From: Blepharisma stoltei ATCC 30299
Taxonomy: Eukaryota; Protista; Ciliophora
Assembly: GCA_965603825.1 (NCBI GenBank)
Contig: CBFDEM010000024.1
Span: 434,001-498,000 of the forward strand
Length of the DNA: 64,000 nt
Reading direction: 5' to 3'
Numbering within the stretch: the stretch's first letter is position 1; each line of letters opens with the position of its first letter. The notes beneath the pieces were generated by a model. It ran no database searches and was not told the DNA's origin. It was given only the letters and a program-made list of their open reading frames with translations. Positions 46,365-47,826 of this stretch are shown in pieces. A program made the translations under genes and the position numbers.

Positions 46365-46805
46365 ATGTCATTTTGACGAGAATTTTTCAGACCTTTACCT
46401 AAATTCTTTTCCATTCGCTGGAGACGAAACATGATTGTATACAACAAACATAAAGAAAGTAAATCTTAAACAGGAAACCAATTCAAGCGTGAAAAAATGG
46501 GTCAGAAATTCAAAGAAAAAGCAAAATCAACATTTGCGAAGCCTTCTGGCATTGATCTTAATGAGGCCCTTAAAATTTTACAAATTGAGTCCAATTATAC
46601 AGTAGAGCAGGTAGAGGAAAGATTTAAACGACTCCTTAATACTAATGACCCAGCCAAAGGAGGTTCTTTTTATCTTCAATGCAAAATCCAAGGGGCAAGA
46701 AATACTTTATTAGAAGAATTAGAAAAGCCTCAAGAGCAGCAAGAGCAAGAAGAGCAAGAAGAGCAAAAAGAAGAAAACACAGAAGGAACTGAAAAGAAGG
46801 AATAA
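46365..46805 (+). CDS. PAM16: Mitochondrial import motor J-like protein Pam16 (Tim16), ~141 aa
   Basis: IDLNEALKILQI...NDPAKGGSFYLQCKI is the Pam16 signature. Upstream exon from ATG 46365 (MSF(W)REFFRP...) joined through intron 46459-46473. Confidence 0.85.
46459..46473 (+). other. 15-nt intron GTAAATCTTAAACAG
   Basis: GT-AG, A at position 10; removes an in-frame TAA and links a basic, presequence-like exon. Confidence 0.75.
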
Positions 46806-46824
46806 ATTATACTTAAGTTAACTT

Positions 46825-47826
46825 TTAGCCAAACAAGCCGCTCATATCTTCATCCTCCTCTTTTTCAACTCTATTAAAGCGGTCTCTATCATGAGGTCTC
46901 ATATAGTCAACTCTTGGTCCAAATGGAACGACTCCAGTTGGGTTTATTGTTTTATGGCTCTTATAATAGTGATTTTTAATATGATCGAAATTAACAGTCT
47001 CGCTGACCCCTGGTATCTGATATATATCTCTCAAATAGTTGGACAAATTCTTATACTCTTCAATTCTCTGCAAATTGCATTTAAAATGGCCAACATAGAC
47101 TGGGTCGAATCTTACCAAGGTTGTAAAGAGTCTGATGTCTGCTACAGTTAGAGTATTGCCGACTAAGTATCTCTGGTTTTCAAGTTTCTGATCAATATGA
47201 TCCAAAGCACAAAACAGCTCTTTTACAGCTTCTTCATAAGCTTCTTGAGTGGTTGCGAACCCTGCTTTATAAACTCCATTGTTGATCTTGTCGTAGACAA
47301 ATGTATTTGTTTCGTCAATTTCTTGTTTTTTATCAATAGGATAGTAATCGTTGTCATTGGCACAGTCAAACTCACTGTTGAACATGAGGATAATTTCTGC
47401 GGACTCATTTGATACTGCTGTTTGAGATAGTTTATCCCAGAGAACTGGCACAGTGACTCTTCCCGTATAGTCAGATTTGGCTCTAAGATAAACCTCATAC
47501 AGGTATGAGCTATTATTTAGATGGTCTTCAGTGCTTCCTTCAAAGTTGCCAAAAGTCCACCCATTTTCATACATAAGTGGATTGACAACAGAGACAGAAA
47601 TTGCATGCTGAAGGCCTTTGAGATTTCTCATAATCAATGTGCGATGTGCCCAAGGGCAAGCATAAGAAACATAGAGGTGATACCTCCCTTCAACCCCTTT
47701 AAAGCCACTGCTTCCATCACGGGTAATGAAGTTTCTGAATTGCGATGCTTGCCTTACAAATTTTCCTCCAGTTGAAGAAGTGTCATACCATTGATCGACC
47801 CATTGGCCATTAACTAGCAAGCCCAT
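46825..47826 (-). CDS. Glutathionyl-hydroquinone reductase (GST Xi/omega-like, YqjG/ECM4 family), 333 aa
   Basis: MGLLVNGQW.DQWYDT..TGGKFVR, RYHLYVSYACPWAHR, YTGRVTVPVLWD, NESAEI, INNGVYKAGFATTQ, HYYKSHKTINPTG. Confidence 0.95.
   Translation of the reverse strand: MGLLVNGQWVDQWYDTSSTGGKFVRQASQFRNFITRDGSSGFKGVEGRYHLYVSYACPWAHRTLIMRNLKGLQHAISVSVVNPLMYENGWTFGNFEGSTEDHLNNSSYLYEVYLRAKSDYTGRVTVPVLWDKLSQTAVSNESAEIILMFNSEFDCANDNDYYPIDKKQEIDETNTFVYDKINNGVYKAGFATTQEAYEEAVKELFCALDHIDQKLENQRYLVGNTLTVADIRLFTTLVRFDPVYVGHFKCNLQRIEEYKNLSNYLRDIYQIPGVSETVNFDHIKNHYYKSHKTINPTGVVPFGPRVDYMRPHDRDRFNRVEKEEDEDMSGLFG

Follow-up and report, generated by a model that had tools for sequence, protein, structure and literature searches.

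A predicted glutathionyl-hydroquinone reductase of the ciliate Blepharisma stoltei with a ribosomal P-stalk-like C-terminal tail

Results

A predicted glutathionyl-hydroquinone reductase (GHR) of Blepharisma stoltei ends in a short acidic-hydrophobic tail that resembles the free C-termini of ribosomal P-stalk proteins. As judged from sequence, this tail is a real and statistically strong oddity of narrow range, and its function is one that we infer. The reading that we favour, with a probability of about 0.4, is that the tail would act as a weak bivalent tether to eEF1A, eEF2, eIF5B or ABCE1, bringing a Cys-dependent deglutathionylase to these factors.

The gene lies in a window of 64,000 nucleotides (contig C24, positions 434001-498000), and the genome searches covered the whole 41.46-Mb, 64-contig assembly. 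In B. stoltei, a heterotrich ciliate, UGA codes for Trp and introns measure 15-16 nt; both properties fit the translations of its stalk genes and the RNA data. Coordinates of the features discussed here are collected in Table 1.

Table 1. Features of the GHR locus, in order of position within the window
Feature	Position	Strand	Basis
Pam16, convergent neighbour, with a 15-nt intron at 46459-46473	46431..46805	+	Pfam Pam16, E 1e-17
Spacer between the Pam16 and GHR stop codons, 19 nt	46806..46824	.	sequence; 16 nt in organism B
GHR gene (YqjG/ECM4-like, Xi-class GST), intron-less, 333 aa	46825..47826	-	Pfam GST_N_2 and GST_C_2; YqjG match; AF2/Foldseek
Putatively gained 15-residue C-terminal extension, R319-G333, with stop	46825..46872	-	absent in paralogs, sister copy L218 and other homologs
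P-stalk-like motif EKEEDEDMSGLFG, E321-G333	46828..46866	-	PSSM 25.0 bits; 8/13 identity with own P0
Tyrosine triad span (Y186, Y244, Y287)	46966..47271	-	alignment to YqjG residues that we take to be Y195, Y253 and Y296
CPWA active-site motif, predicted catalytic Cys57	47647..47658	-	sequence; CPWA conservation in GHRs (PMC5063366)

The open reading frame runs on the minus strand from an ATG at 47826 to a TAA at 46827..46825, and its 333-residue product, already recorded as an identical protein in NCBI and UniRef, ends in PHDRDRFNRVEKEEDEDMSGLFG. The enzyme had been named correctly in the original prediction: a Pfam search matched GST families alone, and among solved structures E. coli YqjG is nearest (E 4e-133), with fungal and plant GHRs ranking behind and an identity of 62-68% to bacterial Xi-class members. 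An AF2 model (101-sequence input, pLDDT 94) was matched by Foldseek to YqjG 4g0l with E 1e-38 and TMq 0.88. The motif C57-P-W-A is present and the triad Y186/Y244/Y287 is intact, its residues being invariant or near-invariant in our alignment (A1). With a fold and a long N-terminus nearest to a solved GSTX, the CPWA cysteine and the tyrosine triad, the protein belongs to the Xi class by every feature testable on sequence and model, and glutathionyl-hydroquinone reductase is its predicted activity. CPWA is strictly conserved among GHRs, and ECM4 is a dimer with thiol-transferase activity; by analogy with this family, the ciliate enzyme probably dimerises via its helical domain (PMC5063366). Fold, CPWA and triad are thus the same as in the known Xi-class members E. 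coli YqjG, Sphingobium PcpF and yeast ECM4, from which the present protein, known from sequence, differs in belonging to a ciliate and in carrying a 15-residue acidic-hydrophobic extension that is found in none of ~450 homologs.

The tail had originally been placed at 46825-46878, which covers F317 to G333 and the stop. The tail is real, but F317-N318 represent the ancestral family end, as a sister copy terminates in DRFNN-stop, and the part that can be regarded as gained is therefore 46825-46872 only. In the AF2 model residues 316-331 form a low-confidence helix (pLDDT 53-61, as for the last 13 residues) off a core with pLDDT>90, and the tail is thus predicted to stand outside the fold.

Likeness to stalk proteins was scored with a PSSM built from 74 non-self P0 tails. 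The GHR tail reached 25.0 bits, compared with 24.9 and 21.7 for the native P0s and 21.5-30.2 for native P1/P2, so that the resemblance claimed for it falls within the native range. The p value of 2.6e-9 per position (1.3e-7 with an acid-rich null) assumes independent sites and refers to a motif chosen post hoc, and a genome-wide pattern count was therefore added as an empirical check. By chance ~6e-4 such tails would be expected genome-wide, for 9 offsets and what we assume to be ~25,700 genes. In a six-frame search of the genome the pattern [DE][DE][ILMF]xG[ILMF]F[GDE] occurred 13 times, but only in the GHR and the two P0 genes did it lie close to a long-ORF terminus; a looser terminal pattern brought in 1 additional, weaker gene, ending EDWSILFD. 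The latter, a frame of >320 codons closing with LNEDWSILFD-stop (C47:472061-472087), is the sole other long-ORF terminus to combine acid with LFD and is much weaker than the GHR. No family of other stalk-tail mimics was found across the genome with these terminal patterns, and HMMER searches of PDB and Pfam with the tail alone returned no match, as expected for 22 low-complexity residues.

Ten PF00428 loci are present in the genome (two P0, four P1 and four P2). Comparison with these native ends upheld the proposed likeness for the core of P0, with 8/13 positions identical and, over nine consecutive positions, DEDMSGLFG in the GHR vs DEDLGGMFG in P0. It did not extend to the very terminus: native tails run on past FG, P0 ending in EVDEDLGGMFGDEDY (the FGDEDY ending) and P1/P2 in GAMDLFGGDEW or GGMDLFGGDEW, and the GHR tail is therefore a core-only mimic. 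An ending of the DEDY/GDEW type occurs in 10/10 native stalk genes and nowhere else in the genome, the GHR stopping at FG. Among 120 P0 homologs retrieved, the heterotrich-like ones carry DED[VL]GG[LM]FG or DMGGMFG followed in nearly all cases by an acidic-aromatic extension, and DEDMGGLFG is found in several further homologs. A terminal Trp/Tyr extension is common to heterotrich-like and several other protist P0s; those of animals, plants and fungi end in GLFD. Both P0 genes of B. stoltei (C48:396700-398838 and C56:743820-751518) lie 2-8 kb from an eEF1B-family (PF00736) gene, probably within a duplicated block, and a 34.7-kb contig of SRR24908292 (Logan) carries a P0 that is 81% identical to the B. 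stoltei protein and comes from a related Blepharisma-like ciliate.

Counted from the C-terminal Gly, E321, M328, L331 and F332 of the GHR correspond to E96, L103, L106 and F107 of archaeal aP1. All four of these aP1 residues contact aEF1-alpha, and L103, L106 and F107 contact aEF2 and aABCE1, to which short aP1 peptides suffice to bind, as helices; the L-F pair is important in silkworm P1/P2 as well (PMC5887453, PMC6125642, PMC4267659). Ser329 occupies a position where Gly is near-invariant (-4.0 bits). The Asp at the position of aP1 G102 is also carried by native P0 and is therefore tolerated in the Blepharisma lineage. With uL10/P0, P1, P2 and aP1 the GHR has in common a free C-terminus in which acidic residues precede hydrophobic-x-x-L-F-G; unlike them, it lacks the stalk N-terminal dimerisation domain, the uL10 rRNA-binding domain, the Ala-rich hinge and the DEDY/GDEW ending, and has Ser for Gly at -5. 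PF00428 and PF00466 domains are absent from it, and it is not among the ten PF00428 loci. We conclude that the GHR, having neither the dimerisation nor the rRNA-binding domain, is not a stalk protein, and that its end, to go by sequence comparison, resembles the ciliate P0 core and is statistically stalk-like.

The convergent Pam16 gene served as the control for RNA evidence. In three assemblies of organism A (X1, X3 and X4) the 15 nt of its intron are missing at 46459, spliced out, and the contigs are therefore RNA. They cross the GHR tail with no letter changed and no gap. The tail is thus present in transcripts, as the original prediction required, and is neither an intron nor an assembly error. 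A hidden intron or assembly artefact had been considered, there being a GT..AG 15-mer inside the tail, yet RNA contigs of four runs cross it unspliced. In X1, X3 and X4 one unstranded contig joins Pam16 and GHR; the fourth run, X5, which comes from another study and represents a second organism (organism B), yields a separate GHR contig with the tail included. The organism B GHR transcript extends into the coding end of Pam16, so that the 3' ends overlap antisense.

The X5 contig aligned over 46824-47821 with 63 differences and 0 gaps, corresponding to ~6% DNA divergence. The alignment passes the GHR stop by one base, and the spacer beyond it is shortened from 19 to 16 nt. The tail is retained in the second organism in a gapless alignment whose last nine codons (325-333) are not readable letter by letter, since an end filter hides differences near the ends of aligned pieces (a difference at 46802 was visible only in a loose-end consensus). 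Among the eight readable tail codons, N318 and E324 carry silent changes and one codon has a replacement, K322R, i.e. 1 amino-acid change in eight codons vs 3-6 expected under neutrality (estimated P ~0.01-0.15). In Pam16 the two organisms differ by 26 third-position changes in 72 codons. The tail in organism B fits purifying selection, as weak evidence from two organisms ~6% apart.

Four other GHRs are encoded in the genome, a tandem trio on C15 (69-70% identical to the tailed copy) and a single copy on C10 (48%), and the tail is absent from 4/4. The tandem region (C15:121061-125085) also contains a decayed fragment with stops between the genes, and the total comes to five GHRs in a maker of quinone pigment. 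No acidic LF tail was found among 290 protein matches, 80 metagenome and 80 genome loci (~450 homologs, mostly bacterial); when the last 60 GHR residues were queried against 1.84 billion representatives, no alignment extended past query residue 54. Stentor or other heterotrich GHR orthologs were not among the matches listed, a weak blank given UGA-Trp truncation. In a quick tree the tailed GHR is sister to the C15 trio (SH-aLRT 95), followed by the C10 copy and the metagenomic L218, all nested in bacterial sequences; the tree, drawn from a quick search and with the Blepharisma copies as its only eukaryotic GHRs of known origin, makes it likely that the Blepharisma GHRs are of bacterial origin by transfer. 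Since the tail is missing in the four paralogs, L218 and the other homologs, it is most simply a lineage-specific gain on the branch of one paralog, and the conservation anticipated among relatives holds, gapless, for organism B but fails for all of these. Inheritance from the bacterial donor was rejected on the same blanks, there being no acidic LF tail in the 290 proteins, the 160 loci or the 1.84-billion search.

At the DNA level the tail matches native P0 at 9-10/13 first, 11/13 second and 6-7/13 third codon positions. Recent copying from a native P gene is rejected on these third positions and on the different 3' UTRs; as third positions have mostly turned over relative to P0, any capture must be old. 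The tail would thus derive either from a P0 3' fragment captured long ago or from convergence. An in-frame TAA four codons past the GHR stop, which coincides with where P0 terminates, is not kept in organism B and was dismissed.

The nearest non-Blepharisma GHR, L218:29-979, is located on a 999-nt metagenomic contig with AT-rich flanks. A read-through tail was considered for it and discarded; only six codons separate its stop from the contig end, and these are not acidic. The AT-rich flanks together with an internal TGA (between YR and GF) suggest that L218 belongs to another ciliate, and the Cys found at this place in the homolog L220 points to a Euplotes-like code, with UGA read as Cys, and to an earlier acquisition by ciliates.

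Discussion

We suggest that, after the split from its three closest paralogs, one paralog of a bacteria-derived Xi-class GST would have gained a short linear motif of the type found at the ciliate P0 C-terminus. Dimerisation via the helical domain is typical of Xi GSTs, so that two tails would be displayed. Each, as a short helix, could insert its M328/L331/F332 face into the hydrophobic groove with which eEF1A, eEF2, eIF5B or ABCE1 binds the stalk, docking weakly and probably with micromolar affinity. A Cys57-dependent deglutathionylase would thereby be kept near oxidation-sensitive translation factors and may strip glutathione or glutathionyl-quinone adducts off them; such repair would benefit a cell that is full of blepharismin, the photosensitising quinone pigment of Blepharisma. 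Any coupling of quinone stress to translation, as originally proposed, would be conjectural. A light-induced Blepharisma GST, of this or another GST family, was reportedly described by Takada in 2004. With the ribosome-anchoring domain missing, the tail would be a tether and not a stalk substitute.

Supporting the tether is the fact that the tail scores like native stalk tails and is the strongest non-ribosomal C-terminal match in the genome. The register with aP1, the Asp that native P0 also carries, the modelled helix, the gapless retention in organism B and the properties of ECM4 speak for it too. Against it stand the missing DEDY/GDEW ending, a lack that could affect how ciliate factors are bound, the Ser329 in place of Gly, a retention seen in only two close organisms, and the four paralogs that do without a tail; furthermore, the multivalent native tails on abundant ribosomes could outcompete that of the GHR. 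More demanding is the proposal that the P-stalk mimic has been selected as a docking motif. The thiol/quinone reductase, acquired horizontally, would then ride on translation GTPases or ABCE1 and either repair or regulate these partners during oxidative stress caused by the pigment. We regard this as doubtful.

It may be that the tail is instead a tolerated relic, either an in-frame P0 3' fragment or a chance stalk-like read-through, persisting as a harmless acidic solubilising extension with no factor binding. Its presence in 1/5 paralogs and in no other homolog, a length shorter than that of native stalk tails and a retention seen in two close organisms only are all in agreement with this. 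Yet the core still scores native-like after what the P0 third positions (6-7/13) indicate would be an old capture, and organism B keeps the length of the tail while the adjacent spacer changes. We consider such a relic unlikely, while taking it seriously.

A tail that is functional towards another receptor (PUB/PUL, the proteasome gate, TCTP or eEF1A) or as an intramolecular active-site lid, with its stalk likeness due to convergence, appears distinctly unlikely. Motifs of acid plus L-aromatic serve several receptors, as can be seen from the organism's own Cdc48 copies, which end in EEEDLYS-stop, and its own eEF1B-alpha, which contains EEDDVDLFADD. The Cdc48/p97 PUB-binding/HbYX tail has the same acidic run with L-aromatic-small residue at the end, but that of the GHR lacks the Tyr which PUB binding needs and has the M-S-G spacing of P0. 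In eEF1B-alpha and other GST-fold translation scaffolds, what is presumably a GST-like fold is likewise followed by an acidic D-x-L-F stretch, and eEF1B-alpha meets eEF1A; the GHR, in contrast, is a complete predicted catalytic Xi enzyme near bacterial ones, with no exchange domain and with its motif at the terminus. On the P0-tail PSSM the stretch in eEF1B-alpha reaches 0.8 bits, and the nine-position match to P0 is far closer than that to either Cdc48 or eEF1B-alpha. A lid would have a parallel in the C-terminal helix that packs on the core in YqjG and Gordonia GHR (PMC5063366).

Still less probable is a competitor or signal, by which free tails would damp translation during quinone or light stress, either sequestering elongation factors or stimulating GCN2. 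A GCN2-like kinase is encoded in the genome (C18:488477-491950), and GCN2 is activated by free yeast P1/P2 (PMC6919976); mammalian GCN2, however, needs uL10 domain II besides the tails and is aided by ribosome attachment (PMC6919976). Domain II is absent from the GHR, which speaks against the GCN2 activation originally envisaged. A GHR dimer would offer two tails vs five per ribosome, and there is no evident stress switch that would expose them. The kinase locus (L241:1978-5451) comprises RWD, kinase and HisRS-like regions in 1157 codons with UGA read as Trp.

Finally, we give very little credence to a decoy model, in which ribosome-inactivating toxins from prey bacteria would be captured by a free tail of canonical appearance, the native stalk ends having diverged. 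Such toxins do bind the C-terminal peptide of the stalk (PMC3280276), the native tails of Blepharisma do have additional C-terminal residues and the cell feeds on bacteria, but the GHR tail has neither the Phe of GFG nor the terminal Asp, and an alanine scan of the stalk peptide showed that changing either raises the toxin Kd to at least 50 uM (PMC3280276).

Conclusions

No report of a cellular enzyme with a P-stalk tail was found in searches of the open-access literature, in agreement with the earlier remark that no description of such a fusion was known. Stalk tails have so far been known as parts of the ribosome and as docking sites of toxins. If the GHR tail binds translation factors, the motif can be borrowed for targeting an enzyme to the translation machinery, and the stalk tail would be a portable short linear motif available to other proteins, giving reason to search other genomes. 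The three ~70%-identical tail-less paralogs constitute natural controls. If the tail is neutral, it would be a curiosity confined to one genus; if it binds, it would offer a clear case of a bacterial gene fitted into eukaryotic translation via a gain of 15 residues.
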